From assembly GCA_977017575.1 (NCBI GenBank), contig CDRNVI010000100.1, forward strand, positions 1 to 64,000: a DNA stretch of 64,000 bases, written 5' to 3'. Shown here piece by piece: positions 1,215 to 61,900 of the stretch. How positions within the stretch are numbered: the stretch's first letter is position 1; each line of letters starts with the position of its first letter. Below the pieces are notes generated by a model. It had not been told where the DNA came from. It ran no database searches and saw nothing but the letters and a program-made list of their open reading frames with translations. A program made the position numbers and the translations under genes. Origin of the DNA: Paramoeba atlantica (lineage: Eukaryota; Protista; Discosea).

Positions 1215-1274
1215 TTTGCACTTTTACTAGGCAGTTCCGTCTTTATTAGACACTTTTACTAGTTACTCTTATCC

Positions 1275-3693: not shown

Positions 3694-4431
3694 ATGCTAC
3701 GCGCTATTCCGAGCCGAATGTCGCATCGTGCCGCTTTTCGTTGTGTTGCAGGACATACACGTACATGTACGTTCGCCATGCAGGCTACACATTTTAGACG
3801 CCATAGCGTTATCCCACACCCGTTCGGTAACGTGCAAAAGAACCCATTGGTATCCTTGCAACTCCGTTGGAAATCGTCGCTAAACATTCCCATCTCTTCA
3901 TCCCTTTCAAACAAGGGAGTTATGCAGCAGAAAAAGAAAACCTGCTTGAAAAAGACGAAATCCAGCGACACGAATACGGCTGCCACAGAAACTATTGCGC
4001 CGCACAATGACGCCTCTAGGCAGAACGATTTTCAGACAAAATCGACACAACTTCATACCGACTCAGCTGCTTCGATGAATTCGCAAACCGCTCCATCATC
4101 CGGCGACCCTGCCACATTGTGTTCACCCTCACTTATGGACCAGGTGCGTAAGTATGGTTTGGGAGGCTTTCTCCTGTATTCTCTTATTCACTTCTTCTCC
4201 ATGCTGCTTCTATTAGCGCTGATAGGGCTCGGTGTTGACCTTATCGGGCTCGCAAGATCTTACAATCTTCCCCTTCCTTTGGAAAGTTCTCCGGGAGGTG
4301 ATCTTTTGACTCTTTTCGTATTCTGTATTGCACTGAACAAACTTTTTGTTCCATTACATGTCTCACTCACACTCGTTCTTGCTCCACGATATGCACCCTT
4401 ACTATCAAAGTGGGCTCGTTCCTTATTTTAG
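3694..4431 (+). CDS. DUF1279/FAM210-like membrane protein, tandem paralogue
   Basis: First ATG at 3694; VRKYGLGGFLLYSLIHF...LGVD domain clearly homologous to C-terminus of 1275-3197; presequence-like N-terminus. Confidence 0.65.
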   Translation: MLRAIPSRMSHRAAFRCVAGHTRTCTFAMQATHFRRHSVIPHPFGNVQKNPLVSLQLRWKSSLNIPISSSLSNKGVMQQKKKTCLKKTKSSDTNTAATETIAPHNDASRQNDFQTKSTQLHTDSAASMNSQTAPSSGDPATLCSPSLMDQVRKYGLGGFLLYSLIHFFSMLLLLALIGLGVDLIGLARSYNLPLPLESSPGGDLLTLFVFCIALNKLFVPLHVSLTLVLAPRYAPLLSKWARSLF

Positions 4432-4711
4432 ACCTCCCTCTTATCTTTTTCTATTCTTAGCATTTTTTCCTCCTCTTCATTACGGTCCATGTGTCGTGAC
4501 ACACCATGTTATCTCATTTTTTAAAACAACGCACAGACATCAAACCAAAACTCCCCCCCCCCCCCACCTTCCTCTTTCCTAACCCCTTTCCCCCTTTTCT
4601 CCCCATTCTCTACCCCCCATCTCTCTACCCCTCACCCTCTCCCTTTTCCATTCCACACCACCCACCCTCTATCTAACCCGCCTTACCCCCTTTTTCGCCT
4701 CCCCACCCCCC

Positions 4712-6136
4712 ATGACCTCTTCCTCCTCCCCCCTCCCCCCTCAGGAGGCACAACTCCACCACGCGGTATCCCCCCCCCACGACAACAACAACAGTGACAC
4801 TAACGACAACACCCCGGACGACACCCACCGCAACGCCACCATCGCCTCCACCGCGGCCCACATCCTCTGCACCATGATCGGCGGCGGCCTGCTCTCCCTC
4901 CCGCTGGCCTTCGCCCAGGCCTCCCTGCTCCCCGGCATCCTCATCACCCTCCTCAACGCCCTCCTCGCCTGCCTCTCCGTCTACTTCATCTGCAAGAGCT
5001 GCGACGCCACAAAGGTCTACTCCTTCCGCGGCCTCATCCTCCGCGCCTTCCCCCACACCAACCCGAAGCTCCTGGGGATCCTCACCGAGGGCCTCATCCT
5101 TGCCTGCAACACCTTCATCCTGATGATCTACACCACCGTGATCACCGACGCGATGCCCGACCTGTGCCACGGGCTGTGGGGGGGCGGGGTGTGGTCCACC
5201 AAGTGGTTCTGGATGCTCACCTGCGGGGGGGTGTTCGTGGTGCTGAGCCCGATACGACGGCTGCACGAGCTGCTGGTGGTCTCCATCCTCGGGTTCGTCG
5301 CGATGATCGTGGTGTGCCTGGTGGCGTATGTGCATCTCGGGGAGGTGAGCGTGTTCCCGAGCGGGGGGGAGTTGGAGTGGTTTACGCTCGGGGATGGGGT
5401 TTTGCCGGCGTTCGCGGTGGTGTGTGCGGCGTATACGTTTCATATGAATATCCCGCCGTTGTATGGGGAGTTAAAGAACCCCACGACGGGACGGATGATG
5501 ACCGCGACGGTGCTGTCGGTGGCGATTGGCGCCGCGATGTATATCTCGGTAGGGGTTTGTGTGTATGTGGCGTTTGGGAAGAGTGTGGTGATGTCCGCGG
5601 CGGCGGGGGGGAACTACCTGCGGCATTTCTCGGATACCCATGGGTGGGCGAATGCGGCGCGTGGGATGATTGTGTTTCACATTATTTGCGCGTTTCCGAT
5701 TTTTGCCATCGTCGCGCGACGCTCGTGGTACATTATGATGACGGGGAACGAGCAGGAAGAAAGTTTGTGGAAGCGAGTGGTGATGGGAGTGACTTTGGTC
5801 GTGTTCGCGGTGTGCATCACGTTGGTGATTCCGGGACTGGGGGTACTGATGGCGTTCACCGGGGCCCTGTTCGGGACCTCCATTGAGTTTATCCTCCCTG
5901 CCCTGTTTTACTATCGGTTGCACGGCTCAAAGCCGTTGGAGAACAGGCACGCGGAGGAAACCACGGAAGAAAAGGCAGGCGAAGTTGCGATCCCTTGCGA
6001 GCCCGTAAAGAAGACGTCGTTGGTACAAGTCGCCGTGGGAAGTCGAGGGATGCGCTATGCTGCCATTGCCGTGGCACTTTTCGGGGTGGTGGATATGGGA
6101 GCTAGCCTTGCGGTAGTGATTAAGGATTTGTGTTAG
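4712..6136 (+). CDS. Amino acid transporter (Aa_trans/AAAP, SLC38-like)
   Basis: 474 aa, about 11 hydrophobic segments, motifs TMIGGGLLSLPLAF, AYTFHMNIPPLYGEL, GALFGTSIEFILP. Confidence 0.92.
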   Translation: MTSSSSPLPPQEAQLHHAVSPPHDNNNSDTNDNTPDDTHRNATIASTAAHILCTMIGGGLLSLPLAFAQASLLPGILITLLNALLACLSVYFICKSCDATKVYSFRGLILRAFPHTNPKLLGILTEGLILACNTFILMIYTTVITDAMPDLCHGLWGGGVWSTKWFWMLTCGGVFVVLSPIRRLHELLVVSILGFVAMIVVCLVAYVHLGEVSVFPSGGELEWFTLGDGVLPAFAVVCAAYTFHMNIPPLYGELKNPTTGRMMTATVLSVAIGAAMYISVGVCVYVAFGKSVVMSAAAGGNYLRHFSDTHGWANAARGMIVFHIICAFPIFAIVARRSWYIMMTGNEQEESLWKRVVMGVTLVVFAVCITLVIPGLGVLMAFTGALFGTSIEFILPALFYYRLHGSKPLENRHAEETTEEKAGEVAIPCEPVKKTSLVQVAVGSRGMRYAAIAVALFGVVDMGASLAVVIKDLC

Positions 6137-6487
6137 AAATAGTAAATCATGAGGTAATGTACTTGGACTAAAACGGTGTTAAGAGAATGTAAGTCGATGA
6201 GCGTAAAAATCAGTTTGGGCGGTTTTCCTTTAGTATCTTTCGTGTCAGCTAAAATTTTCATGGTTACTGTATTTTTTTTATAAGCACCTAGTAAAAAGTT
6301 ATCCCATTATTTCTTTTCCCAAAGACGATTTCATCTGATTCTTTAACATTTGAACTGCATTTCTTCAAAAATTTCATTTTTACACTATTATTACATGCTT
6401 TTTGTTCCTTTGTTTTTTGGGCTAGCTTCAGTGGCCTTCGCACCGTCCCATCAAACTTCACATTTTAGCTGTTACCTCTTTTATTGA

Positions 6488-7420
6488 ATGCCGTCTTGCA
6501 TTTCATTTTTGACACTTTTTTCTTCCTTCATGTGCCACGTTCTTTGTAAGGACGACGGTTCGGATCTTAAACTTGGACGGGTTAATCTTTCACTCGTTCC
6601 GCAGGAGATTCTTATGGAGCGCTTTATTGATGGGTTGCATGTCACACCACCGTCTTGGAAGTTTACGAAGAAACGATATTTAGGACTTTCCTCTACCCAT
6701 GTATCGATTTGCACCTGGGAAGGCATTATTTGCGACAAGGATCAAATCGTTCGGCGGGTTCTTTCTGGTAGTCATAATCTTGCAGGATCCTTGCATTATC
6801 AGTATTTGCCTCGAGGTGTCCACGAGCTCCGAATTGGTCGCAAGGGACCTGATATTAGCGGAGATCTTGATTTGCTATTTCTTCCCGAATCATTAAAAAT
6901 AATGTCGGTACAAGGCAATGCACATAACAGTACAATCTCACTGGGAAGTCTTCCTAGCTCGTTAACTCTTTTAAACGTTTCCGACAATCAACTCCACGGA
7001 GAGCTTGATCTCACACATTTGCCGGATAATTTAACGCATTTGCTACTCAATATGAATCTATTTTCAGGTAGTATTTCTCTTACCCAACTACCAGAAAAAT
7101 TGAAAGTGTTACGACTAGACCATAATCATATTGAAGGCCCTGTAGATCTCACTTCTCTTCCCACGAACTTGACAGATCTGATCCTTGTGCAAAACAGGTT
7201 TTCCGGCACCATCTCCCTAGAAAAGCTTCCTCTAAGTCTTCTGAGGATGCGGTTAGATACGAATCGTTTGCAAGGCCCTCTGAATCTACAACCTTTGGCA
7301 CGTTACGAATTTCTTTTTGGTTTCTCGTTCTTGGAAAATTACTTTTCAAAAGACGATGCAGCGACCGCTCCATATGGGTTTCAATTAGGATCCCAGCGTC
7401 AACCTCTAAAGAAGTGCTGA
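6488..7420 (+). CDS. Leucine-rich repeat protein with predicted signal peptide
   Basis: Hydrophobic N-terminus, CTWEGIIC cap, repeats of type LxLxxNxFSGxIxLxxLP. Confidence 0.85.
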   Translation: MPSCISFLTLFSSFMCHVLCKDDGSDLKLGRVNLSLVPQEILMERFIDGLHVTPPSWKFTKKRYLGLSSTHVSICTWEGIICDKDQIVRRVLSGSHNLAGSLHYQYLPRGVHELRIGRKGPDISGDLDLLFLPESLKIMSVQGNAHNSTISLGSLPSSLTLLNVSDNQLHGELDLTHLPDNLTHLLLNMNLFSGSISLTQLPEKLKVLRLDHNHIEGPVDLTSLPTNLTDLILVQNRFSGTISLEKLPLSLLRMRLDTNRLQGPLNLQPLARYEFLFGFSFLENYFSKDDAATAPYGFQLGSQRQPLKKC

Positions 7421-7463
7421 AAGCACGTTTCACGAGTACCGTATACCCCCCCAGTAGTAGACC

Positions 7464-8030
7464 CCCCCAGTAACAAGGATTTGACCCTTTTTTGGCCGAC
7501 CCCCAGTAACAAGGATTTGGCTCGGGAGGGTCGCTGGAGGGGGGGAGGGGGTGTTTGAGGGGGGTGCGGGCGGTTGCGCGGGAGCGAATTGCGTAGTTGC
7601 GGGATTGGCTGGACAGAAAATCAACGCTCTCATGAACAAAAAAGACCTTTTCCCACCAAAAAAGCATACCCCCCAGTAACAAGGACTTGGCTCGGGAGGG
7701 TCGCTGGAGAGGGGGAGGGGGTGTTTGAGGGGGGTGCGGGCGGTTGCGCGGGAGCGAATTGCGTAGTTGCGGGATTGGCTGGACAGAAAATCAACGCTCT
7801 CATGAACAAAAAAGACCTTTTCCCACCAAAAAAGCATACCCCCCAGTAACAAGGACTTGGCTCGGGAGGGTCGCTGGAGAGGGGGAGGGGGTGTTTGAGG
7901 GGGGTGCGGGCGGTTGCGCGGGAGCGAATTGCGTAGTTGCAGGATTGGCTGGACAGAAAATCAACGCTCTCATGAACAAAAAAGACCTTTTCTCACCAAA
8001 AAAGCATACCCCCCAGTAACAAGGATTTGA
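7464..8030 (+). repeat. 170-bp tandem repeat, about 3.2 copies, G-rich
   Basis: CCCCAGTAACAAGGA recurs at 7501, 7671, 7841 and 8011; units nearly identical. Confidence 0.95.
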
Positions 8031-14093: not shown

Positions 14094-15060
14094 CTCCCCC
14101 TGTCATTAATAATTTCTTTTTTAGGCTTTTCGTTAAATGCGGTGGTTGTTTTCAACTTAGAAGTCCCTCATGCTGCGCTCTTCGCGTTGAAAACTACCTC
14201 CGCGTTTAACGAAGAGCCCAAAAAAGAAATTTGGCCTGGAAAGGTGAAGAAAACGGAAAGATTATAGCCAAAAATAGCCGATTTTTGGGTAAAAATGGGG
14301 TGATTTTTGCGTATTTTTGCTCTCAGAGCACTAAATCTGATATTTGCGTGTGCGAAATCACTCGTAGGCGTGAATGCAAGCCTACTGAACGTGTTGGGTA
14401 GAGAATGCGACTCCAACCACGCCATTCTTTCGACATAAAAAGGCCTCTTGGGGTCCGAAAAATACTTTTTCACCTTTTTTAGTAAAAAATGGACCATTTT
14501 CGCGGGCATACCACGGCTCGAAGAAGAGATAGCTTGGGAAAACAACTGGGCGGAAAGCTAGTATAGGTCCCAAACTCAAAATACAATAGGGGAAACGATT
14601 TTTGGAAAAATAATTTTTTTACCATCTTTTTCGCCAAGTTGAATTTTTTTTCAAAATTTTTTTTCCGAAAAAATCCGAACTTGGCGGACCCGTCCTGCGG
14701 CTACGAGGGGGGGTCACCCCGGGGTACGGGGGTGGAAAATGCGCGCCAAGACCCCGGCTACCCTTTCTGCGGTTTTGTTTCGAAAAATCATTTTTACAAA
14801 AAAATTTCGTGCGGTATGCTCCCCCCCCCCTAGACCCCCCATTTTTTTCAATTTTGACCACCGGAGCCCCTTTTTATATTTTTTTCTTCTATTATATTAC
14901 TGTGTTCCTCTTTATATTTTCACTGTTTTTGTTCACCTTTTTTTCAATAATCGAGGGTAGAGCGGTAGTTTTACAACCACCGCAATGATAATGATAATCC
15001 TCAAGAATGATAATTTTTTGAGATTATTATTATCATTATCATTATTAATGGCAGGGGGAG
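14094..15060. mobile_element. Roughly 95-bp Stowaway-like MITE (TIR CTCCCCCTG(T/C)CATTAATAATGATAATGATAAT, TA flanks) split by an 873-bp insertion
   Basis: Joining 14092-14112 to 14986-15062 restores a 34-nt inverted repeat with one mismatch. Confidence 0.8.
14113..14985 (+). mobile_element. Complete non-autonomous hairpin-ended element (5' large palindrome, internal modules, 3' small hairpin), no TSD
   Basis: Starts TTTCTTTTTTAGGC, ends ACAACCACCGCAA; segments recur at 37.6, 48.8-49.4, 53.9-55.1, 57.7 and 61.0-61.6 kb. Confidence 0.8.
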
Positions 15061-17618: not shown

Positions 17619-18470
17619 ATGAGCAACGGCCGACTGATAATTCCACGCTTTCGATTACGTGCTTTACTCTACTACGGTGGTTATTCTTTTAAGGCCAAAG
17701 TATCAAATCTGTCTCTCTCCCAAAAAAAAATGGACGCAAGAGTCGCCTTTTGTCAATCAATGTTAAAAGAGAACGAGGCAACCGAAGGCATATTTTTTAA
17801 GCGATTAATATTTTCTGACGAATCCTGGATGGAAGCGGGGGACATGTCCAGAGGTGCTTGGCAAAGTCCGACTGACATTGTGTATAAGTCAAGGACGCAT
17901 CATCCAACGAAAGTAATGATTTGGGGTGCTATTGCGGGCGACGGACACGTTTTTTACCACTGGTGCGATTTCACCAAGTTTTACAAGGATGAAGCTTCGC
18001 GTGAATTGCTACCTGGGGAAAAGCGGGAAGAATTTCCTCAGGAATTAAAACTCGGATCGTTATATTACCGCAAGTCGATATTGGAGCCCCATTTTTTGCC
18101 TTACGCAGCCACTCATGAAAACATTATTCTTATGGAAGACGGTGCTCCCGCTCATCGGGCCATACTTACAAAAAAGTGGTGGAAAGATCGAAAGGCGATG
18201 AACTTGTCACGGTACGTGAGTACAACTGGAGAGTTAATGCTTCGCTGGCCGGCGGATTCCCCAGATCTTAATCCAATTGAGAACTTGTGGAACCAAACAA
18301 AGCAATTCAAGAACCGTAAATGCCCCATTTCTGCAGGTGAAATTAAGCGCGTATGTGAATCATATTTGGACTCCGTAGAAGCGAAGGAGTCGATAAAGAA
18401 GCTGCATGTCTCCTTCAAAAAAAGACTCGAGTTGTGCATATTATATAAAGGAAAGAAGATTCCTTACTAA
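17619..18470 (+). CDS. Tc1/IS630 DDE catalytic domain (DD46E)
   Basis: IFSDES, MIWGAI, MEDGAPAH, WPADSPDLNPIENLW; reading frame open from 17535 and includes a second HTH-like segment. Confidence 0.9.
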   Translation: MSNGRLIIPRFRLRALLYYGGYSFKAKVSNLSLSQKKMDARVAFCQSMLKENEATEGIFFKRLIFSDESWMEAGDMSRGAWQSPTDIVYKSRTHHPTKVMIWGAIAGDGHVFYHWCDFTKFYKDEASRELLPGEKREEFPQELKLGSLYYRKSILEPHFLPYAATHENIILMEDGAPAHRAILTKKWWKDRKAMNLSRYVSTTGELMLRWPADSPDLNPIENLWNQTKQFKNRKCPISAGEIKRVCESYLDSVEAKESIKKLHVSFKKRLELCILYKGKKIPY

Positions 18471-40852: not shown

Positions 40853-41704
40853 TCATGCCAACTTATGCCAATTCATGCCAACTTGTGCCAGTTCATGCCA
40901 ACTCATGCCAACCAAGACTTGCACAGTCTCCTTTGAATGAGGCAGTATCAGCCTATTAGTGCGACTGTCATAAAACCCCCCATCCGCAAGAGCGCGAAGA
41001 TTGCATTTCGACAAAAAACTGAGGACCCCGCTGTGATCTTGAATAACTGCATCCGAAGATGCTCCACAATACAAAGTGTCAGATGTGAAGCAAACAAATC
41101 CTGACATTGTACACGCCACGAGAGCCTTAACTACGTGCGTAGCGTACTTTGGCTGGTAACAACGAGGTAAACTATCAACAAAAAGAGGGACAGTGCCCAA
41201 AGCCACTGTAACATCTTTATCCCAGAAAGGAAATGCAGTGTTAGCTTCGTGAAAAAGAATATCAGAGTCAAGGGACAACCAAGATTCTTTCATATTCTGA
41301 TACATTTTCTTGAAAAAAGCCGGTATTTTGTCGGCACAAGAGCGTTCAGACCATCCTGGGCCAAATTTTAACAGCATAAGTTCAGAGGTGATGTCGTAAC
41401 TACCCCCGCATCGTAAAAAAAGAAAGCTGGCAAAAATTTCCTCGAAAGGGTAAAAATGCCTTAGCAGGGCAAGAACTCGGTGGCTTAGCCCACAGAGAGA
41501 AAGCTCAGAATATTTCATCTCATATGGGGCATCCGGTTCACGTGCATCCGGTTCCACATCAGATTCAGATGGAGGGACAGAGAAAGGTTCGGGATTCGAG
41601 CCACTACTCAGCGCCGAGGTATCTGAAAAGGGCACCATAAAGATAAAGGAACAGAACAGAAAAGCAATGTAGAGCTTGTTAATAACAGTACGTTTTAAAA
41701 CCAT
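40853..41704 (-). pseudogene. DDE_Tnp_4 (ISL2EU/Harbinger/IS5-like) transposase, 3'-truncated
   Basis: YQPKYATHVVKALVACTMSGFV, CGASSDAVI, ALADGGF...LILPH; ends in a 10-bp (CATGCCAACT)n repeat. Confidence 0.7.
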
Positions 41705-43430: not shown

Positions 43431-43770
43431 GGCACCCGGACATTTATAATGCATATTAAGCTGCACATTGCTAATGCATATAGCACATTTGTAATGCATA
43501 TAGCACATTTATAATGCATATAGCACATTTATAATGCATATAGCACATTTATAATGCATATCACAATAGTGAATTTCTTGGACACCTCAACTTAATTTTT
43601 TTTGCAGCATTCACCAGTTTATGTCGCAGACGGGTAAACAAGGTCTGGGTTTATTGGCCCGGCCGGCCCCTCCGTGCGTTCGGCCTCTCATATTCCCCAA
43701 AACAACTACCACCTTCCCCCCATTTATCAGGGGTCGCTCACGCGACCCCCGTTAAATAGGGGGGGGGGAG
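43431..43770 (+). repeat. 20-bp minisatellite (ATAGCACATTTATAATGCAT)n followed by module E palindrome
   Basis: About six units at 43440-43560; E arms joined by CGCTCACGCG spacer near 43735. Confidence 0.85.
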
Positions 43771-44716: not shown

Positions 44717-44744
44717 CAACAAGGTACAGAAACTGTATCTTTAT
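44717..44744 (-). other. Spliced-leader exon sequence without GT donor (processed-type copy)
   Basis: Minus strand TAACG-ATAAAGATACAGTTTCTGTACCTTGTTG then ATTTTTTTATC-ATG; 28 nt identical to 57016-57043. Confidence 0.75.
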
Positions 44745-48803: not shown

Positions 48804-49410
48804 TTGTGGTGGTTGTATAACTGCCGCTCTACCCTCGATTATTGCGGTGGTTGTATAACTCCCGCTCTACCCTCGATTATTGAAAAAAAAGTGAACGAAA
48901 ACAGTGAAAATATAAATAAGAACACAGTAATAATAGAAGAAAAATATATAAAAGGGGCTCCGGTGGTCCAAAAATTTTCAAAAAAATTCGGACCCTTGGG
49001 GGGTCCAGGGGGGGGCATATCGCACGATTTTTTTTTGAAAAACTTATTTTTCGAAATAAAAGCGCAGAAAGGATAGCCGGGGTCCTGGCGCGTATTTTCC
49101 ACCCCCCTACCCGGGGGTGACCCCCCTGGTATGCGCAGGGCGGGTCCGTCAAGTTTAGATATTTTCGGAACTTTTTTGAAAAAATTTTCAACTTGACGAA
49201 AAAAATGGTAAAAAAATATTTTTCCAAAGTTGTTTCGCCTATTGTGTTTTTATAGTTTGGGACCTATTCTAGCTTTCTACGCCATTGGTTTTGCGAGGTG
49301 TCGCTTCTTGAAGCCGTGGTACGCCTCCCAATATGACCCATTTTTGACCAAAAAAAGCGAAAAAGTAATTTTCGGAACCCAAGGGGTCTTTTTGGGTCGG
49401 AACGTAATCT
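48804..49410 (-). mobile_element. 3' portion of hairpin-ended family element with duplicated terminal 37 bp
   Basis: Reverse-complement match to 14450-14985; TTG(T/C)GGTGGTTGTATAACT..CGCTCTACCCTCGATTA occurs twice at 48804 and 48842. Confidence 0.85.
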
Positions 49411-52400
49411 CTTCGTATTGATTACTGCGAGCCAGTGGACGATCCTCTTTAAAATGAGCTCTGTCCACAGGTGCACTTGGCTCAGATTGAGCCGAAGTTG
49501 CAAGTCGTTCGTTTTGAATCATTTCAGCATAGCGCTTTCGCGCATTTATGACTGAAATATTGGACCTCGTCCTTGTCCTTGTCGATGCAAGATCAACATT
49601 TTCTTCGGAGGAGTTCTCAGTAGAACCTCCTAACGCGGCCGTTAAAGCTCGCGTTTGTAGTTCGCAGTATGCATTCTGCTGAACCAATCGCTCTTCATTG
49701 ACCACTGCAGTGTTCTGCTGTGCTTCAAGAGTATCTTGAAGATGAGGTTCAACCTCGCGCACTTCAAGCTCATTTTCGTACGCAATGTTCCGTGCTAATA
49801 CTGCTTCTTCCAGAGTGCAAGCATCTTTGCGTCGATACAAATCTGCCGCGTTCTCTGTATTCTTCGAAGCATGTAAAAGCCGAAGAAAGTTGCACATTGT
49901 GTCATACTTTCCAGGCGTATTTACTTTCGCTTCATTGAGAAGCTTTTCAAACCCTTCTGGGGTCATTTCATGGCTCGGTGAGCCTTTCGTCCATGGGGAA
50001 AACAATGCCACCATGTGTTTCGCTACTCGAAGCTGGCTTCGAGCTTATGTCCCAGGTTCTTTTGAAGAACTCAATATGGGAAAACCTGGTACAGCTGGCA
50101 CAGTGTGCAAAGAGCGCAACTGTTGCTCAACAATATCTCCAGGCTCAAATTCCGGGAGGCCGTCAATGTCCTCAAAGGCGTATCTCCCATTAGCACGACG
50201 TCCGCGACGACGTCTTCGATTTGTCCCTGACTCAAAATCTTAATCACGATCGGGCTCTTCTTGAGCTAGCTCAGCTCTTTTCTTCTTTACGCTGACAATG
50301 CCTGCATAGGAATACAGGTCAAGGTCTTGAAGATCTTCGCCCATGTGCATGTAACGCACATGGAGTGGTGCAAGAACTGCACAATCATGTTCGGTGATCA
50401 TTAGAGCTCTACCATACCGTTGTCGAACTCTATATCAGAGTCTTGTGACGAATCATCGTCACTGATTTCTAGATCTCTGTGATCTGACTCACTTGAGATG
50501 TTTGCCAGGAACTTCATTACAGGTTCACATTGATCCATGTGAAGTATGGCTCATGTACTCGGAGGGTTGGCCGAGACAAAAGGCAGTTGCCATTTCGATT
50601 GAAGCTTCCGATGTGTCATGTTCGACAATTCTCTTTCGATGTGTCATGTTCGACAATTTCTGTAAAAGTAAGCGTGCCATCGGAATGTCAGTTTGCACTC
50701 TGTGCTCTGAATTCAGACCCCTTCGAAGGTGGTCATTGGCTGCGCGAAGTGCTGGTACAATGTACACAGGTGGACCAATGTCCTTGCTCATATATTTTAT
50801 GAGATATTGCATAATTTTTATGCCGGGGCCTTCGCTTCCAATGAAAACTACACATGTATTGCATCTTACGCAAGCAGTGAGTGTCTCATTGTACGGAACG
50901 ATGAGGGATCCCCGTTTAGTGTCTTGTGTCGGGTCCTGGTTATTGCGCAGAAGCACAATCAGAGACCGTTCATCAAGTACTGACCAAATGGTATCATTTT
51001 TAATCGGCCGTGTTGGAGGCTTGAGCCAGAATTCCGGTTGTCCAGATTCATCCATCTGAACCTCAACCTCTCTAACTTCCGTTTCATTTTCATGAAGTAC
51101 AGATTGTACGGATGCAATGCCATATCGGCATTTGTTCTTGTTTATATTTCCTTTCATTTTGAAACACATGGGTCTGTGACCAACGTGCTGCTGAACATCA
51201 ACAGCACATTTGGCCACATGTTCCCTTAAATAATCATCCTTTTCATCAGGAATGATATGTAGTCCTCCGCGATACATCGTCGGGCGTTGCAGGGCCGTAA
51301 AGCTCCTTACTGATCCTTTGCGCCCACTCGGGCAGATCAGAGCGCATCGTCGTACCCAAAGACTTCGCGAGACCATCGTGCTCCTTCACAATGTGAATTC
51401 ATTCGAAGACGTAGTGTGGACTAAGATTCGTCCATAGCACACTATGAAAGTGTAGCGCACCTCTTTTCTGGCATTCTACGACACCAAAAAATGCTCGAGG
51501 TCGACCAAAGAGGCCTTTAAGAACGTCACGTTCCTTCTTTACCTCATCTACATTCGACATTCCATACAATTCGGTAAGAAGAGTACGGATTTGCCGTTCG
51601 AAAATGCTGGTGGATCTGACAGGATTCCCTTGCACAAGCTCAGATCGCTTGAGAAGGTTGGCCCGCATTTCCTGCATTTTTTCGCTCTCATCATTTGTGA
51701 TGATTCTTAGAGCTAGAACGTTATCGTTCATGTTTGGACTCACTGTGGTCCAGTAAGTTGGCAGTCCGTATCGCCTGCATAAGGCGTAGATCTGACCTTG
51801 TGATGCCTTTCGCTTTGCTGGCGAAAAGGGTATCGTTTTTGCGCATATTTGCACAAATGGCAGAAACTTTGTTTCCAGAAGTTTCGCCTCGGAACTGTTT
51901 GGGTTCCTTATAGCCTGTTGTACAATGTGATAGAAAGCATCAGCATTGCAAAAATTAACGAGGCTTCTGTGCATATCTTTGTTATACTTCAGATTTTGCA
52001 CTACCGCTGATGAGACTGCACGGCGCCGAAGCACATCGTAGCAGTAAAATATGAATCCAGCATTCTTTGCAAATCGGGAATCCGATTGCTCTAGAATTGT
52101 CTTGATTTCATATGGTTCAAACGTAGAACCCTTAAAAGGGTACTTTTGCATCAGCGTCGGAAATGCTCCGAGCAAGATGTTTCCATGTCGACATACTCAT
52201 TGAGTAAACCTTCTTTTTGTTTCAGTTGCATCGCCACGGCGTGCGTAATTTGCGCACCCGCCGGCGCATTGCTTACAGGGCAGTGATCGGTTACAAAAGC
52301 TCGTGTGATCTCACCGCGAGGATCGCGATGTGACGTATCGGAAGCCACTGCTTGGGTGACCATACTGTTGATGGCGTTTTCACCCTCCTGGGAAACGGAT

Positions 52401-53785: not shown

Positions 53786-54439
53786 TATGTTTTATTTATG
53801 AATATTTTGGCTCAAATCCTTCCGTTTTCTTCAGCGTCCCTGGCCAAAGTGAAAGAAGACTGCGGGAGGGAGAGTATTCGAATACACTTAGTGATTGGCC
53901 AGTTTTCCTTTTTTAGGCTCTTCATTAAACACGGTGGTTGTTTTCAACTTAGAAGTCATTCATGCTGCATGCTTCGCGTTGAAAACTACCACCGCGTTTA
54001 ACGAAGAGCGTAAAAAAGAAAAATCTCCAAAAGATCATGAATAATCTATTTTTTTTGGGGTAAAAGCTCGATTTTTCGGCAAAAATTGCAAAATTTTACA
54101 CCGAATTTGGGCCGTTTTGGATGCCTTCCCAGTAGGGGCACGAGTCGAATCTGTCGCAAAAACATAGTAGAATGGTAGCTGAGGTCCCAAACTCCCCAAA
54201 ATACGGTTTAGGAGTCGATTGTGGAAAAATTTTATTTTTACTTTTTCTTGGATCAAATTATTTTTTTGGTCACCCTAAAAATTTCGGAAATTTTGACCGT
54301 GTCGGACCCCTCCTGCGCGTACCAGGGGGAGGTACCCCCAGGGGGGGGGGTGGAAAATTATCGCCGCGGCCTACTCTACCACTTCCCTGCGCTAGATTTT
54401 GAAAAGCAAAAAGTTCGAAAAAAAATTTCGCGCCGTATG

Positions 54440-54626
54440 CCCCCCCATGGACCCCCCCCATGGACCCCCCCCATGGACCCCCCCCATGGACCCCCCCCCA
54501 TGGACCCCCCCCATGGACCCCCCCCATGGACCCCCCCCATGGACCCCCCCCATGGACCCCCCCCATGGACCCCCCCCATGGACCCCCCCCATGGACCCCC
54601 CCCATGGACCCCCCCCATGGACCCCT
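54440..54626 (+). repeat. Minisatellite (CCCCCCCATGGA)n, about 15 copies
   Basis: 12-bp unit read directly. Confidence 0.97.
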
Positions 54627-54695
54627 CATTTTTTTGAACTTTTTTTTTCAGTTTTGGATCACCGGGGCCCCCCTTTATATTTTTTTCTTCTATTA

Positions 54696-55006
54696 CTATC
54701 CACCCCTATTTAATAGGACTCCGATTTTGGGCGAAAGGCCCTAATAAAGCGGGGGGACACGGAAAATAATATGAAGAAATCGGCGCCGCTTCGCCGCGCC
54801 TTTTTTATCGTTGTGAAACAAAGTCCTACTCCCTTTTGATACACTTTTGGTTGTTGGGGTAGATACGAAAAAAAAAATCCGCCACTTCGCGGCGCATTCG
54901 ACAATTTATTGGCACTTTCCCCGAAATCTTTTTTGGCCTTCCAGACAAAATAGCCCTATTAAAGGGGGGGGGGTGACACGTAGCCCTATTAAATAGGGGG
55001 GGATAG
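54696..55006. mobile_element. 311-bp MITE with TA flanks
   Basis: TA-CTATCCACCCCTATTTAATAGG versus CCTATTAAATAGGGGGGGATAG-TA. Confidence 0.75.
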
Positions 55007-55854
55007 TATATTAGTGTGTTCCTCATTATATTTTCACTGTTTTTGTTCACTTTTTTTTAATAATCGAGGGTAGAGCGGTAGTTATACAACCACCGCAAAT
55101 TCCTCCCTACAAGATACGGCACCCGCACATTTATAATGCATATTAAGCTGCACATTGCTAATGCATCTAGCACATTTATAATGCATATTATTTTTATCAT
55201 AGTGTTGTACACTAGAGATTTTCATTCCGGATAATCCTGGCAAAGATCAGGATCTTGTTCCGAAAGAGATTTTCCTACTCAAGCTGCTTGTGGTGGGTTC
55301 CAGGTGGGGTTCTGTCGCATAGTATATAGCCTAAATGAAGCCTGCAGTGCAGCAAGGGCAACGTTTTCACGCATTTTGCGAACGTGGTGCTTATAATCTT
55401 TTGGGAATCTCACCCCCGCTAAATAGGGGGGGAGGTGGTAGTTGTTTTGGGGGAAATGAGAGGCCGAACGCACGGAGGGGCCGGCCGGGCCACTGAGTGT
55501 GACGTTGGTGGGAAGCAATTTGCGAAGCCTCTAATGAAAAAATATAATTAAATATGCTTGTCACTGAGACAAACCACAGAAATCTCAGATACGAGGAGGG
55601 AAAAACTGCAAAACGGAGCTGTGGACGTGCTGTACTAAATGAAAAAAATCGCACATATAGTCTGGATGAAAAAATCGTACACTTGTCACTGAGACAAACC
55701 ACAGAAATCTCAAATAGGAGGAGGGAAAAACTCCAAAACGGAGCTATGGACGTGCTGTACTAAATGAAAAAAAATCGCACATACGTATCTTGAGTTTTGT
55801 TTGGGGCCCACAATAAATGAAGTAAAAAATCACTTTGAATTCTACCCGAGCATA

Positions 55855-56862
55855 CTACTGCGAATCCTGTGAGCTATCCATCAGAATACGAGGACGAAGC
55901 ATAGGAGGGGCGATAACCTTGATATTTTCGATCAATTCAATAGGCGAATTGTTCTCCAGGACATCTTTTGGTCGTTCGTTGATGGCTGCAGATGTCGTAT
56001 CAAGCGCAGCTTGCGTGACGTGGGTGAACGATGTTCGCTTACGGTAGAAATCACGAACAAGACCATTGAAATTTTCAACGCCCCCTTTCTCCCAACTTGC
56101 GTAGGGCTGACAAAAGAATGATTGACAGCCCACCGAAGCGTTCACTAGTTCGTGTTTCGCGAACTCGGTTCCATTGTCGTACGTGATAGTGAAAACTTGG
56201 AACCCCTGCAGAGCACGAGTGACCTCCTCGGCTACAACTTCTGATTTCTTGTTCTCCAACTTCCGGAGAACTCCGTAGCGGCTTTTTCTCTCCACTAAAC
56301 TGAGAAAATAGCCACTATGTTGCGCGCCTTCAATCAAGTCACACTCCCGATCTCCATATCTGGAGCGAGTATTGACGAAACCTGGGCGCTCGCTTATGTC
56401 AGTTCGATTCGGTATTTTCAGGCGATTTGTACCCCGTCGCCTTCTACCGCGACCTCCCCCCCGGCGCAGGAACTGAACTAAATTCCCTGCTCTGTCTTCC
56501 TGTTTGATGAATCCATAAACGGCTACACGAGAAATCTTTACCCCATCTTCTTTAAAGAGAGTTGTAGCGATTTGCTGTGGGCTAAATCTCTTCCCCAGCA
56601 AAGCAATCACCTTCTCTTGCACATCACCTTGTATTTTCTGGTGCTTGTGTTTCCGCGAGGAAATGGATGTGTTTGCCGCTCGTTGCGCGCGCTTCGCATT
56701 ATACTCCCCGTTACGCATACCTCTCGTGAGCTCGCGGCTCAGCGTTGACTGATTTACAGACAACTTTTCGGCTATTTCCTCCTGCGAGAAACCTTGCTGG
56801 TTGTATAGCACCTCTATTTTAGTGCGATCTTCATGATCCATACGCTTTTTTGATTGTGCCAT
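55855..56862 (-). CDS. IS30-family transposase, intact (copy 1)
   Basis: HTH_38-like N-terminus (SQEEIAEKLSVNQSTLSRELTR), FSPQQI, ERPGFVNTRSRYGDRECDLIEG, LVERKSR, YDNGTEF, PYASWEKGGVEN (DD33E), INERPK. Confidence 0.95.
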   Translation of the reverse strand: MAQSKKRMDHEDRTKIEVLYNQQGFSQEEIAEKLSVNQSTLSRELTRGMRNGEYNAKRAQRAANTSISSRKHKHQKIQGDVQEKVIALLGKRFSPQQIATTLFKEDGVKISRVAVYGFIKQEDRAGNLVQFLRRGGGRGRRRRGTNRLKIPNRTDISERPGFVNTRSRYGDRECDLIEGAQHSGYFLSLVERKSRYGVLRKLENKKSEVVAEEVTRALQGFQVFTITYDNGTEFAKHELVNASVGCQSFFCQPYASWEKGGVENFNGLVRDFYRKRTSFTHVTQAALDTTSAAINERPKDVLENNSPIELIENIKVIAPPMLRPRILMDSSQDSQ

Positions 56863-56896
56863 TGAAACAGAAAGCTGAGAGAAAAACGTAGAATTA

Positions 56897-57007
56897 TGCA
56901 TGTGAATGTGCTATATGCATGTGAATGTGCTATATGCATCTGAATGTGCTATATGCATGTGAATGTGCTATATGCATCTGAATGTGCTGTTATGCATGTG
57001 AATGTGT
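56897..57007 (-). repeat. 20-bp minisatellite (ATGCAT(G/C)TGAATGTGCTAT)n
   Basis: About 5.5 units directly upstream of IS30 copy 1. Confidence 0.95.
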
Positions 57008-57015
57008 TATATACA

Positions 57016-57160
57016 ATAAAGATACAGTTTCTGTACCTTGTTGGTACATTTTGCTAGCCCTTCCTTTCTTTTCCCGGAAACGGGCATATTCTTACTTTTA
57101 AATGCCCGTTTCCGGCTGACGGCTAGCTGGAACTGTCCCTCTTTGTCGCGGAAGTAGGGG
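57016..57160 (+). ncRNA. Spliced-leader RNA gene-like sequence, 5'-truncated (exon 57016-57043 plus GT intron)
   Basis: ATAAAGATACAGTTTCTGTACCTTGTTG|GTA matches the kinetoplastid SL core; downstream perfect 14-bp stem CCGGAAACGGGCAT/ATGCCCGTTTCCGG closed by GCTAGCC/GGCTAGC. Confidence 0.7.
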
Positions 57161-57599
57161 ACGCACTTCGCACTCTTCACCCCTCCCCGGCTCGCTCTCT
57201 TCGAGTGAGCTTTCTTCTCCCGGGAGCTATGCGCCATGGTGGCCTCCCTTGAGGACCACTGGGCGTGCTACCGCGGGAGGACACGTTGTATGCGTGTATA
57301 GGGGATGCGAACTTGCACCCCTCTCTCCCTACATGCTGTAGCGAGTGCGGCGGTAACGGACCTCCCCATGATGCATCATGATCCACGATAGATCATCTGA
57401 CAGCATGAACCCACGGCTTGACCGTGCTGCAGCATGAACCATGGCTATACGTGCTGTAGCATGACCGATGGGCGTCTCGTCTCCTACCTCGCACTACACT
57501 CTCTGTGTGACACCCGTCGTATGCGGGTCATGCGCCGATGGTATCGGCCGTCACACAGAGAGACGTATCTCTGCGCCACGAGCGTATGATCATGACCAT

Positions 57600-57720
57600 T
57601 TATGCATGTGAATGTGCCGCTTAGTATGCATTATCAATGTGCAGTAAATATGCATTTGAATGTGCTAATATGCATCTGAATGTGCTATATGCATTATAAA
57701 TGTGCCGCTTAGTATGCATT
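57600..57720 (-). repeat. 20-bp ATGCAT-type minisatellite array
   Basis: About 60 bp near-identical to 61830-61895. Confidence 0.85.
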
Positions 57721-57721
57721 A

Positions 57722-57915
57722 TTGCGGTGGTTGTAAAACTACCGCTCTACACTCGATTATTGAAAAAAAAGTGAACAAAAACAGCGAAAATATAAAGGGG
57801 AACACAGTAATATAATAGAAGAAAAAAATATAAAAGGGGGCTCCGGTGGTCCAAAACTGAAAAAAAAAAATTGAAAAAAATGGGGGGTCCATGGGGGGGG
57901 GTCCAGGGGGGGGGC
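57722..57915 (-). mobile_element. 3' end of hairpin-ended family element
   Basis: TTGCGGTGGTTGTAAAACTACCGCTCTAC...GAAAAAAAAGTGAACAAAAACAG; C-run CATGGA/CTGGA motif. Confidence 0.85.
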
Positions 57916-58320
57916 GCCCGCACATTGATAATGCATACTAAGCGGCACATTGATAATGCATATAGCACATTGATAATGCATATAGCACATTGATAATGCA
58001 TATAGCACATTGATAATGCATATAGCACATTGATAATGCATATAGCACATTGATAATGCATATAGCACATTGATAATGCATATAGGACATTGATAATGCA
58101 TATAGCACATTGATAATGCATATAGCACATTGATAATGCATACTATGCGGCACATTGATAATGCATATAGCACATTGATAATGCATATAGCACATTGATA
58201 ATGCATATAGCACATTGATAATGCATATAGCACATTGATAATGCATATAGCACATTGATAATGCATATAGCACATTCATATTGCATATAGCACATTGATA
58301 ATGCATATAGCACATTGATA
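57915..58320 (+). repeat. 20-bp minisatellite (ATAGCACATTGATAATGCAT)n, about 20 copies
   Basis: Read directly. Confidence 0.97.
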
Positions 58321-58565
58321 AGAGTGACAAAGACATCCGATTCTTATCCATAAATGTGCGTCCTTTATATACACGGGCATGTACTTATGCGCGTTACAAA
58401 AAAAAAGTGACCCCCCCTCGAAAAAAAAATCGACCCCATGAAAAAAAAGTGGAGGGGGGGAATAAGTTAAAAAGAAAAAAAGTGGAGGGGAGAAACAAGT
58501 TAAAGAGCGCTAGTATTTCATTCCTGCTCCCGGTGAGGCCCCGGAGTTGCGAGAGGCCTCCATAC

Positions 58566-58660
58566 CCCACAACTACCACCTTCCCCCCCTATTTAGCCGG
58601 GGTAGCGCGAGCGACCCCTGATAAATGGGGGGAAGGTGGTAGTTGTTTTGGGGAATATGA
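58566..58660. repeat. Module E head-to-head palindrome
   Basis: ACAACTACCACCTTCCCCCCCTATTTAGCCGGGGT-AGCGCGAGCG-ACCCCTGATAAATGGGGGGAAGGTGGTAGTTGT. Confidence 0.9.
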
Positions 58661-58704
58661 GAGGCCGAACGCACGGAGGGGCCGGCCGGGCCACTGAGTC
58701 TGAC

Positions 58705-58975
58705 GTTAGTGGGAAGCAATTTGCGAAGCTCAACTTTTCCATCATACCCGACCCCTAGAAAAGCCAAGACTTTGTTTACCCGTCTGCGAGACAAAAATGT
58801 GTGTCGTTAGTGGGAAGCAATTTGCGAAGCCCAACCTTTCCATCATACCCAACCCCTAGAAAAGCCAAGACCTTGTTTACGCGTCTGCAAGACAAAAATG
58901 TGTGTCGTTAGTGGGAAGCAATTTGCGTAGCCCAATTTTTCCATCATACCCAATCCCTTACAAAGCCAAGACGAC
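58705..58975 (+). repeat. 101-bp tandem repeat, about 2.7 copies, downstream of IS30 copy 2
   Basis: GTTAGTGGGAAGCAATTTGCG at 58705, 58806 and 58907; an analogous 125-bp duplication (55557, 55682) lies downstream of copy 1. Confidence 0.9.
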
Positions 58976-59198
58976 TGAAGCCCAACTTTTCTGACTGAGC
59001 CCAACTGTTCCACCATACCCAACCCGTAATAAAGCCAAGACCTTTTGAAGCCCATACACGTAAAGAAAACAACATTCAATGCAAGAACGCACACGAAATG
59101 CAAATATCCAATACAAACAAGGCCGCGCAGTTTCATAGGAAATTAGTGTTTTATGACACAATATTTGAAGTAAGAAGCCCACGCACACGAAAAGAGGT

Positions 59199-60179
59199 TT
59201 AAGATTCCTGCGAGCTGTCCAAGAGAATTTGCGGTCGAATTTTCCGTAAGTTTTGCACAAACTCAGATGGGGACTGGTCTTGGAGCACCACTTTCGGTCG
59301 AGCATTGATATTGCTGGATACGGAATCAAGGTCTGCTTGGGATATATTACTGAAAGGATGAGACTTTGGGTAGAAATCTCTGACGACGCCATTGAAATTT
59401 TCGACACCACCCTTTTCCCAGCTCGCGTACGGTTTACAAAAGTACGACGAGCAATTAAGGGAACGATTTACGCTCTCGTGCTTCGCGAATTGCGTTCCAT
59501 TATCATATGTGAGTGTCCGTACCAAAAAGCCTTGAAGGGCGCTGGTGATAGTCTCTGCTACAAGAGTCGATTTCTTGCATGATATCTTTTTCAGGATCCC
59601 GAAACAACTTTTGCGCTCAACCAGGGTAAGAAAGTGGCGTGTACCTTCTATTAGATCACACTCCCAATCACCGTATCGTTCCCGATCGTTAACAATGCTG
59701 GGCCGCATATCAATATCTGTACGATTAGGGATGCTGGTACGATTAGTTCCACGACGACGGCGTTGTCCACGAATTCCCCCCCGACGGAGGCAACTCTCCA
59801 AGTTTTGACTCTTATTCCGACTAATAAAACCATAAATTGCCTTCCGGGAAATGCTCACACCTTCTTTACGCAAAGTAACAGATATCTGTTGAGGGCTAAA
59901 GCGCCGACGTAACAGAGATATGACACTCTCTTTGATGTCTCCTTCAATTTTGCTTGCACGGGACTTCCGTTTACTCATTGCTTGGTTGAGTGTTCGTTCA
60001 GCCCGCTTCGCGTTGTACACACCATCCCGATCTCCACGTGCCAGTTCTCGACTAAAAGACGACTGATTTACTTTCAGTTTTGAGGCAATTTGTGCTTGCG
60101 AAAAGTTTTCTTGATTGTGGAGAACCTCAATAAGTTTACGATCTTCTGAATTAATACGTTTTCTAGATGTTTGACACAT
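59199..60179 (-). CDS. IS30-family transposase, intact (copy 2)
   Basis: 326 aa; same motif set: FSPQQI, RPSIVNDRERYGDWECDLIEG, LVERKS, YDNGTQF, PYASWEKGGVEN, INARPK. Confidence 0.95.
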   Translation of the reverse strand: MCQTSRKRINSEDRKLIEVLHNQENFSQAQIASKLKVNQSSFSRELARGDRDGVYNAKRAERTLNQAMSKRKSRASKIEGDIKESVISLLRRRFSPQQISVTLRKEGVSISRKAIYGFISRNKSQNLESCLRRGGIRGQRRRRGTNRTSIPNRTDIDMRPSIVNDRERYGDWECDLIEGTRHFLTLVERKSCFGILKKISCKKSTLVAETITSALQGFLVRTLTYDNGTQFAKHESVNRSLNCSSYFCKPYASWEKGGVENFNGVVRDFYPKSHPFSNISQADLDSVSSNINARPKVVLQDQSPSEFVQNLRKIRPQILLDSSQES

Positions 60180-60212
60180 GGTGCAAGAAAGACAAAAAAA
60201 AATATTATCCGG

Positions 60213-60930
60213 TTACATTATGCATTATCAGGTTACATTATGCGTTATCAGGTTACATTATGCATTATCAGGTTACATTATGCGTTATCAGGTTACATTA
60301 TGCGTTATGAGGTTACATTATGCGTTATGAGGTTACATTATGCGTTATCGGGTTACATTATGCATTATCAGGTTACATTATGCGTTATCAGGTTACATTA
60401 TGCGTTATGAGGTTACATTATGCGTTATCGGGTTACATTATGCATTATCAGGTTACATTATGCATTATCAGGTTACATTATGCGTTATCAGGTTACATTA
60501 TGCGTTATCAAGGGTACAATATGCGTTATGAGGTTACATTATGCGTTATCGGGTTACATTATGCATTATCAGGTTACATTATGCGTTATCAGGTTACATT
60601 ATGCGTTATGAGGTTACATTATGCGTTATCAGGTTACATTATGCGTTATCAGGTTACATTATGCGTTATCAGGTTACATTATGCGTTATGAGGTTACATT
60701 ATGCGTTATCGGGTTACATTATGCGTTATCGGGTTACATTATGCATTATCAGGTTACATTATGCATTATAAGGGTGCGAGTTACTATGCGTTATAAGGGT
60801 GCAAGTTTTATGCATTATCAAGGGTACAATATGCATTATCAGTGGCCCTATATGCATTATCAAGGGTACAATATGCGTTATCAAGGGTACAATATGCGTC
60901 ATCAGGTTACATTATGCATTATAAGGGTGC
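60213..60930 (-). repeat. 20-bp minisatellite (TGC(G/A)TTATCAGGTTACATTA)n, about 30 copies decaying at the right end
   Basis: Read directly; immediately upstream of IS30 copy 2. Confidence 0.97.
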
Positions 60931-60959
60931 GAGTTTTATGCGTGATAAGGGTGCGTGTG

Positions 60960-61573
60960 CCCCTACACTAGCTTTCTCCGCAGTTGTTTTCGCAAGGTAT
61001 CACTTCTTCGAACCGTGGTGCGCCCCTCAAAATGACCCATTTTTGACTAAAAATATTTTTCGGACCTAAAGGGGCATTTTTGTGTCGAAAGAATGGTATG
61101 GTTGGAGTCGCATTCTCTACCGAATACGTTCGGTAGGTATTCCATTCATGCCTACGAGTGATGTCCCACGCGCAAATGTCGGATTTAGTGCTCTGAGAGC
61201 AAAAATACGCGAAAATCACCCCATTTTTACCCGAAATTCGGCTATTTTTTAATAGTTCACGTTTTGAAATTTAGCCGAGGGGCGGCTATATATTTGCCTG
61301 CTGGCCCTTCAGGGCACATAATTTTCTCAAATTATGATGTAGTATTCTCTAATTGCATGGAGGGGGGTGTTTACTCGTTTGTTATATTCTTGTTAGGTTG
61401 TTATTTTGTTACGTTTTAAGTTTTGTGCTATAATCTTTCCGTTTTCCAGGCCAAATTTTCTTTTTTAGGCTCTTCGTTAAACGCGGCGGTAGTTTTCAAC
61501 TCGGAGAGCGTAGCATGAGTGACTTCTAAGTTGAAAACAACCACCGCGTTTAACGAAGAGCCTAAAAAAGAAA
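60960..61573 (-). mobile_element. 5' portion (modules D and C) of hairpin-ended family element
   Basis: Reverse-complement match to 14113-14560; palindrome with 44-bp arms at 61447-61573. Confidence 0.85.
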
Positions 61574-61574
61574 T

Positions 61575-61900
61575 AAATGTGCGGGAGGCGGGTCGCGCGA
61601 GCGACCCCTGATAAATGGGGGGAAGGTGGTAGTTGTTTTGGGGGAAATGAGAGGCCGAACGCACGGCCGGGCCGGCCGGGCCAATGAGCCAATAATATCT
61701 ACACGTTTTTTGAAATTTGTGATTAAAAGGGAAGGATCAACAAAATTGAGAAATATGCATGTGAATGTGCTATATGCATGCGAATGTGCTATATGCATTT
61801 GAATGTGCTGTTGTGCATGTGAATGTGCTGTTATGCATGTGAATGTGCCGCTTAGTATGCATTATCAATGTGCAGTAAATATGCATTTGTATGTGCTATA
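61575..61900 (-). repeat. Module E (hairpin GGGTCGC-GCGA-GCGACCC) plus ATGCAT-type minisatellite
   Basis: Matches 58605-58695 and 57600-57670. Confidence 0.85.

Follow-up and report, generated by a model that had tools for sequence, protein, structure and literature searches.

Two intact IS30-type transposase genes on a Paramoeba atlantica contig probably belong to a eukaryote-resident transposon family

Introduction

Three superfamilies of eukaryotic DNA transposons are named after prokaryotic insertion sequence (IS) families, namely ISL2EU, IS3EU/GingerRoot and IS481EU/Banshee of parabasalids, and together they are referred to as 'ISxEU' superfamilies (PMC10045372). The 2023 paper that counts IS481EU as the third of them predicts that more exist and does not mention IS30 (PMC10045372). 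IS30 also goes unmentioned in a 2026 survey of archaeal IS and eukaryotic-like transposons, and the Ginger paper names it solely as a bacterial relative of integrases. Here we describe two intact IS30-type transposase genes, copy 1 and copy 2, in a stretch of 64,000 nucleotides assigned to Paramoeba atlantica (contig CDRNVI010000100.1, positions 1 to 64,000, assembly GCA_977017575.1), which was analysed whole and is called the window. We conclude, with a probability of roughly 85%, that both genes encode the transposases of a eukaryote-resident, IS30-derived family of DNA transposons ('IS30EU'-like) that arose through a single entry followed by diversification. The original prediction, made from this DNA, held that IS30 is not established in eukaryotes, and we found no eukaryotic IS30 lineage in the literature searched, although most subscription journals and Repbase reports lay outside its scope and an earlier description is possible.

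Other eukaryotic transposons have subterminal repeat arrays or foldback ends, in which long inverted multi-unit ends surround a transposase gene and derivatives without an open reading frame (ORF) occur. Those elements use transposases unrelated to the IS30 type encoded in the window.

Results

Both open reading frames encode IS30 transposases

The features on which the analysis is built are the following:

55855-56901, minus strand: copy 1 transposase frame, an uninterrupted ORF of 348 aa
55855..56862, minus strand: copy 1 transposase coding sequence from its probable start, 335 aa plus stop; the open frame reaches upstream to 56901
59199..60179, minus strand: copy 2 transposase coding sequence, 326 aa plus stop, an uninterrupted ORF

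The original prediction had described two uninterrupted ORFs with the hallmarks of IS30, and its coordinates and every motif it listed were confirmed, as was the family by its profile scores. Both proteins exceeded the cutoff of 80 bits for the NCBIfam IS30 equivalog NF033563, copy 1 with 230 bits and copy 2 with 226.7 bits, whereas the runner-up NCBIfam family, IS481, scored 63 and 61 bits, respectively, against a cutoff of 224. The Pfam HTH_38 domain matched copy 1 at 34.3 bits, above its cutoff of 27, and copy 2 at 26.0 bits, just below it, and matches to HTH_32, rve and rve_3 fell under cutoff in both transposases. The catalytic DDE triad is kept in both copies (D175, D229 and E263 in copy 1) and is invariant across the alignment, and the D-E spacing of the core is 33 residues in each, as had been predicted. 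All eukaryotic copies additionally carry a C-terminal extension, RPxxLxDSSQ(E/D)S, that is absent from the bacterial proteins in the alignment. By GC content at third codon positions, the transposases could be told apart neither from host genes nor from their bacterial relatives.

The initial 13 codons of the 348-aa frame of copy 1 fall within an upstream array of 19-bp repeats. Since the bacterial homologues and the sibling gene at a second locus (L001) also start there, the ATG at 56862 (MAQSKKR, 335 aa) is the likely start of copy 1.

The transposases are multi-copy and form a single clade

A search of 5.8 billion proteins returned ten more relatives at 54-96% identity, all of them from the ENA assembly ERZ24900291, beneath which the next matches were bacterial or metagenomic IS30 proteins at ~44-45%. 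A profile search of 1.84 billion cluster representatives recovered two extra fragments, again from ERZ24900291, and no other eukaryotic-looking source, so that members of the group came from only one ENA assembly in both searches. The copy count reached at least 12 loci in this assembly; they lie on different long contigs, all in a eukaryotic or eukaryotic-transposon context, and no bacterial gene was seen adjoining any copy across these loci. The siblings used for comparison are:

L001: a copy at 96% identity whose frame contains a premature stop, flanked by kinesin/PIG-P genes and, on the other side, an HSP90 gene
L085, L087 and L088: a copy interrupted by a ~4-kb insertion that contains a DUF6729 gene; the break shows an overlap of 8 bp
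L089: a sibling of copy 2 (96-99% identity) that has lost its 5' half and contains a 1.3-kb insertion
L086: two copies tail to tail, with sibling(s) of copy 2 at 96-99%
L002 and L003: further intact ORFs, the L003 frame being extendable upstream to a full-length start

At least four ORFs in three subfamilies are thus intact (copy 1, copy 2 and the copies at L002 and L003), and several siblings have been inactivated by a premature stop, by nested insertions or by deletions. The 3' untranslated region (UTR) of copy 2 is 99% identical to that of L089, which suggests a recent duplication. Siblings that are 95-99% identical at different loci, together with four intact ORFs in three subfamilies, argue for recent activity, which need not be continuing.

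The ~4-kb element (L085 1225-5297, also in L087 and L088) encodes a 660-aa DUF6729 protein (997 aa in L088) and a 342-aa protein, and the L085-type arrangement of this element within an IS30-type ORF occurs twice on one contig, ~12 kb apart. At two loci, an IS30-type copy has a Harbinger-type DDE_Tnp_4 ORF immediately upstream of it (L003 3832-4902 and L089 2621-3793).

The phylogeny was built from 97 proteins, comprising 12 eukaryotic copies, bacterial loci drawn from 185,579 species genomes and metagenomic matches de-replicated at 75% identity (IQ-TREE, LG+C20+F+G4). The eukaryotic copies, 12 of 12, formed a single clade (ultrafast bootstrap and SH-aLRT 100/100), the stem of which measures 0.79 changes per site. 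This clade is nested in a well-supported clade of 44 rows, in which most of the other named members belong to Verrucomicrobiota (Akkermansiaceae, Verrucomicrobiales, Opitutales and Puniceicoccales) at 40-45% identity to the eukaryotic copies. In the searches made, no bacterial IS30 protein exceeded ~45% full-length identity; the best plasmid-borne IS30 was 36% identical, and the closest protein examined in a bacterial setting adjoins GH115/CBM6 genes. Near-identity to a bacterial IS30 with bacterial inverted repeats, which the original prediction had named as evidence that would count against it, was therefore not found. Among the bacterial relatives, three identical copies of 1,214 bp each in one Verrucomicrobiae metagenome-assembled genome (L015-L017) have ~25-bp imperfect inverted repeats and 3-bp target-site duplications (TSDs; ctg, ata and gtt).

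Within the eukaryotic clade, copy 1 clusters with tree entries P0001 and P0007 and copy 2 with P0042 and P0003, and the window therefore holds two subfamilies. Their proteins are 61% identical over 336 aa, which bears out the earlier view that the copies are not a recent duplicate. One explanation for such divergence is that several independent bacterial transfers supplied the copies, which are only 54-66% identical and saturated at synonymous sites. That explanation is very improbable given that all copies fall in one clade at 100/100, that the C-terminal tail common to them is absent from bacteria, and that they have a terminus, repeat arrays and a 3' module in common (see below). A single acquisition that diversified inside a eukaryotic nucleus, as originally proposed, agrees with this clade, with the ~45% ceiling on bacterial identity and with the eukaryotic setting of the loci.

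Between subfamilies, the proportion of synonymous differences (pS) was 0.72-0.90, which is saturated, compared with 0.14-0.30 for nonsynonymous differences (pN), and dN/dS between copy 2 and the L003 copy was 0.064. The combination of saturated pS with low pN indicates long purifying selection on the enzyme since the subfamilies split. Strong purifying selection would also be expected if the intact ORFs were domesticated host genes with a cellular function and no mobility, and the window copies do lack TSDs, with damaged ends in copy 1. We consider domestication unlikely, however, because there are many paralogues in several subfamilies, several of them visibly dead; because siblings 95-99% identical lie at different loci; because conservation extends to the inverted structure of the ends and to the ORF-less derivatives; and because purifying selection is equally expected of an active transposon lineage compared across subfamilies.

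The elements end in inverted repeat arrays

A simple inverted-repeat search around each window ORF found no IS-type inverted repeats. The element ends that it had missed were recognised because sibling copies were compared. Seven ends from five elements align to a common terminus, GGCRCCC-GCACATTKATAATGCATAYTAAGCKGCACATT (also given as GGCRCCC-GCACATTKATAATGCAT and as GGCRCCCGCACAYTKATAAYGCAT), and similarity ceases just beyond it. This conserved terminus of ~45 bp is followed by arrays of ~19-20-bp units that run in inverted orientation between the two ends. Such inverted arrays, with between 3 and 36 units of ~20 bp each, flank both window copies and L001, and the eukaryotic elements are 2-3 kb long.

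Copy 1 is collinear with L001 5847-7441 at 95.4% identity, from within the 5' array to the 3' module. Because the L001 locus is otherwise unrelated and gene-bearing, it defines the mobile unit. The L001 element (5715-7804; 5' array 5715-5968, 3' array 7587-7804) is complete with both termini, and GGT stands on each side of it, exactly at the boundary set by the other ends. This GGT pair is a candidate 3-bp TSD, like those of the bacterial relatives. The copy 1 element is made up of:

55118..57722, minus strand: copy 1 element of subfamily 1, ~2.0 kb long without the foreign insertion of 588 bp, collinear with L001
55118..55188, plus strand: 3' terminus (GGCACCCGCACATTTATAATGCATATTAAGCTG...) and then three ~20-bp units, inverted relative to the 5' array
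55412..55528, minus strand: conserved 3' module, 93% identical to that of copy 2
56863..56894, minus strand: pyrimidine-rich leader with AG just 5' of the ATG, identical in L001
56894..57012, minus strand: inner part of the 5' array, 19-bp units GCACATTCACATGCATATA
57013..57600, plus strand: 588-bp insertion in the 5' array, with a head like a spliced leader (SL) exon (SL core 57025-57036), of a multi-copy family
57601..57722, minus strand: outer part of the 5' array, abutting part Y of a repeat described below

The copy 2 element is made up of:

57913..60961, minus strand: copy 2 element of subfamily 2, 3,049 bp from terminus to terminus; siblings at 96-99% in L086 and L089
57913..58321, plus strand: 3' terminus and inverted array, ~20 units GCACATTGATAATGCATATA
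58525..58729, minus strand: conserved 3' module (58614-58729) and long hairpin, 97.6% identical to L001 7326-7530
58704..58972, minus strand: 101-bp tandem repeat of the 3' UTR, 2.7 copies, subfamily-specific
60180-60204: leader of copy 2
60204..60961, minus strand: 5' array of ~36 units GCATAATGTAACCTGATAAC and a diverged terminus

Between the arrays, the order is a pyrimidine-rich leader, the ORF, a 3' UTR whose tandem repeats differ by subfamily (125 bp x 2 in copy 1, 101 bp x 2.7 in copy 2), the 3' module and the hairpin. The ~117-bp module is 93% identical between copies 1 and 2 although their ORFs are 61% identical at the protein level, and the copy 2 hairpin has a DNA fold of -63.1 kcal/mol (z = -9.7). 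A short pyrimidine-rich leader was found in four of four subfamilies sampled, with no Shine-Dalgarno-like purine run. The original prediction had noted a pyrimidine tract plus AG before the ATG of copy 1: this sequence is real, but the AG does not extend to the other copies, as copy 2 and the L002 copy have the tract with no AG between it and the ATG.

Two derivatives that retain terminus, array and 3' module but lack the ORF were recognised in the window:

61590..61900, minus strand: 5' array, leader and the first ~9 codons fused to the 3' module
43431..43770, plus strand: a terminus and five units, next a short piece of the interior, and lastly the 3' module with part of the hairpin

Reads were checked for copy 1 only, using runs from the same organism assembled as contigs, so that the depths given here are k-mer contig depths. 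In the DNA runs, the copy 1 ORF was represented by short contigs at 96-99% identity, and its depth of ~115-200 (run X1) was similar to that of adjacent non-array sequence (131-154), which lends slight support to residence in the host genome. Depth was ~2,900 in the 3' module, a ~20-fold excess over the ORF, and 27,000-53,000 in the arrays. The ORF-less derivatives and the ~20-fold depth of the module suggest that non-autonomous relatives are abundant.

Short motifs that fit CCCCCCNTTTA(A/T)..GC(G)C are found repeatedly, both beyond element ends and in hairpin arms (L001 5563-5694 and 7826-7843; window 54750-55000), and those of L001 form an additional inverted pair ~8-26 bp outside the termini.

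Copy 1 is damaged and copy 2 replaces a segment of a repeat

The 588-bp insertion in the 5' array of copy 1 begins with the 3' part of a kinetoplastid-type SL exon (ATAAAGATACAGTTTCTGTACCTTGTTG), after which come GT and a perfect 14-bp stem-loop; an Rfam search of this insertion at a relaxed threshold gave nothing meaningful. A direct repeat of 17 bp, CACATTCACATGCATAA, stands on either side of it (56990-57006 and 57601-57617); this repeat may not be a true TSD because it is part of the array unit. Read contigs with the joints 56930->57598 and 56989->57600 represent arrays lacking the insertion, the depth of which was 1200-4800. Copy 1 is damaged elsewhere as well: its 5' terminus lacks the outermost ~17 nt, its hairpin is collapsed with 217 bp of other sequence in its place, and no TSD was found at this copy, one end of which is truncated. 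A contig of run X3 joins 55184, in the inner 3' array, to 57679, in the 5' array, with 13 other letters between, and may be an array-only foldback derivative or an artefact of k-mer assembly.

Copy 2 sits exactly between part Y and parts X-P of a repeat of ~880 bp, which is intact at 14113-14989. The intact repeat was considered as a clean empty site for copy 2 and rejected, as copy 2 replaces a 253-bp middle segment (MID); this replacement could reflect insertion followed by deletion, or recombination. The repeat family consists of parts P, X, MID and Y, of which P is itself palindromic, and it is repeatedly found next to IS30-type elements, in differing orientation. Part Y ends in a microsatellite of 13 bp (CCCCCCCATGGAC and its complement; 54440-54625 and 57882-57914), with a copy number of ~1 to 14 depending on the locus. 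Loci of the repeat family are:

14113-14989
48838-49402
53897-55098
57718-57901 with 60962-61573
L086 648-1513 and 2414-3285

The surrounding DNA is eukaryotic

The 64-kb contig also encodes an Aa_trans amino-acid transporter, an ABC half-transporter, ZPR1, a Tc1-like DDE_3 protein and an RNase H protein. The SL core 12-mer CAGTTTCTGTAC occurs twice in the window compared with 0.02 occurrences expected by chance. In the literature searched it is found in 55 papers, of which those listed deal with trypanosomatids or spliced-leader trans-splicing. The two occurrences have 28 nt in common (ATAAAGATACAGTTTCTGTACCTTGTTG) and diverge thereafter, and in one of them GT directly follows the 28-nt match, as expected of a splice donor. 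The presence of this kinetoplastid-type sequence indicates that the host has a kinetoplastid-type SL, and it is from the SL sequence alone that we label the host kinetoplastid-like. An HSP90 paralogue compared with the PDB gave no information on host taxonomy.

These surroundings bear on the possibility that IS30 genes of a co-cultured bacterium were misjoined to protist DNA, through contamination or chimeric assembly. In favour of this possibility, IS30 is a prokaryotic protein family, and the relatives nearest to the copies belong to aquatic Verrucomicrobiota, which could have been prey or co-cultured. The copies nonetheless occupy at least 12 loci on different long contigs in eukaryotic or eukaryotic-transposon context with no adjoining bacterial gene, they are at most ~45% identical to any bacterial IS30, they are broken by other eukaryotic-type elements and by an SL-headed insertion, and they have neither bacterial-type inverted repeats nor a ribosome-binding leader. 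Contamination is thus extremely improbable, in agreement with the original prediction, which had argued against it from the interleaved host-specific repeats and SL-like sequence; the siblings likewise lie in eukaryotic settings.

Several further observations concern the window itself. The second SL-like stretch of 28 nt, at ~44.7 kb (core 44724-44735, minus strand), continues into unrelated sequence and resembles a retro-copied trans-spliced mRNA. Rfam at its gathering threshold gave no match in the whole window, and a tRNA search of the window found none. Three ORFs of 283 aa (17619-18470, 40853-41704 and 50525-51376) were considered as having a common origin, which was rejected: they are mutually unrelated, only the first matches DDE_3, and their equal length is coincidental.

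Discussion

The protein family, eukaryotic context, multi-copy state, monophyly, purifying selection and end architecture of these elements are direct observations, and the history and mechanism that we propose for them are as follows. An IS30 element akin to those now found mainly in Verrucomicrobiota would have entered an ancestor of the kinetoplastid-like protist once, and the acquired lineage would then have multiplied and split into several old subfamilies, with copies 1 and 2 in two of them. The resulting element is expected to be a cut-and-paste or copy-out DNA transposon. By analogy with IS30, its N-terminal HTH domains would bind the element ends, its DDE core would cut and join DNA, and transposition would give 2-3-bp target duplications; IS30 itself moves through joined-end (IR-IR) intermediates. 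The ~20-bp array units may be multiple transposase-binding sites, and the 3' module with the hairpin may be a cis-acting site. The pyrimidine-rich leader takes the place of a ribosome-binding site and may serve as an SL trans-splice acceptor region, the C-terminal tail is plausibly a eukaryotic adaptation, and we suggest that the ORF-less, high-copy relatives are mobilised in trans.

Several points weigh against this interpretation or parts of it. The copies all derive from a single assembly and a single read study, with no replicate from an independent laboratory. The sole putative RNA run had no contig on the copy 1 ORF. Copy 1 may be immobile despite its intact ORF, given its damaged end, the insertion in its array and its collapsed hairpin, and copy 2 has no TSD, its flanks being ggg and cct; the evidence for TSDs is limited to the one case at L001. 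The arrays could alternatively be a satellite that accompanies or attracts the element, and not binding sites. Lastly, the tree places the donor no more narrowly than within the 44-row clade.

Some of these points would fit a genuine eukaryotic IS30-derived lineage that no longer moves, its intact ORFs being recent survivors. Most of the sampled copies are broken, no RNA was detected on the copy 1 ORF in the one putative RNA run, and the window copies have imperfect ends or no TSD. Set against extinction are the intact ORFs, at least four across three subfamilies, the 99% identity of the copy 2 3' UTR to L089, with the recent duplication that it suggests, and a pN far below pS. We regard extinction as a real possibility, though one that we would bet against. 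The fullest form of our proposal is that IS30EU is a new eukaryotic superfamily, acquired once from Verrucomicrobiota-like bacteria by a bacterivorous kinetoplastid-like protist, still mobile, expressed by SL trans-splicing, and with binding-unit arrays in place of single inverted repeats that also mobilise abundant ORF-less derivatives; taken as a whole this is tentative, and we would give it somewhat less than even odds.

Few links lead from prokaryotic IS families to eukaryotic superfamilies, and a lineage derived from IS30 would be a further one. The transition can be viewed here from both sides, the ordinary 1.2-kb bacterial ISs and their eukaryotic descendants, which would have kept the enzyme and rebuilt the ends, the leader and the 3' region. 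This makes testable how a bacterial transposon adapts to a nucleus with polycistronic transcription and trans-splicing, and kinetoplastid genetics might gain from the family a new transposase of small size (~330 aa).

Comparison with known systems

Like the prokaryotic IS30 family (IS30, IS4351, ISPpu17 and the verrucomicrobial loci L005-L032), the window elements have a single ORF of ~320 aa with an HTH_38/HTH_32 N terminus and a DDE core with a 33-residue D-E spacing; they pass the NCBIfam IS30 profile, and one candidate 3-bp TSD, at their sibling L001, is comparable to those of L015-L017. Unlike that family, they reside in a eukaryotic host at no more than ~45% identity to it. Prokaryotic IS30 elements measure 1.0-1.25 kb and end in single, imperfect inverted repeats of 20-30 bp, whereas the window elements are 2.0-3.0 kb long, end in a ~45-bp terminus followed by inverted arrays, and have added a 3' UTR with tandem repeats, module and hairpin, a pyrimidine-rich leader and a conserved C-terminal tail.

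The features that mark an ISxEU-type superfamily, namely multiple copies in a eukaryotic nuclear genome, defined termini, non-autonomous derivatives and monophyly (PMC10045372), were all found here. As with IS481EU and the other ISxEU superfamilies, the transposase derives clearly from one prokaryotic IS family and is found in one protist lineage, where its copies are monophyletic and accompanied by non-autonomous derivatives. The window elements differ from IS481EU in their source, which is IS30 (227-230 bits versus 61-63 for IS481), in their kinetoplastid-like host and in their ends, which are repeat arrays and not TGT..ACA.

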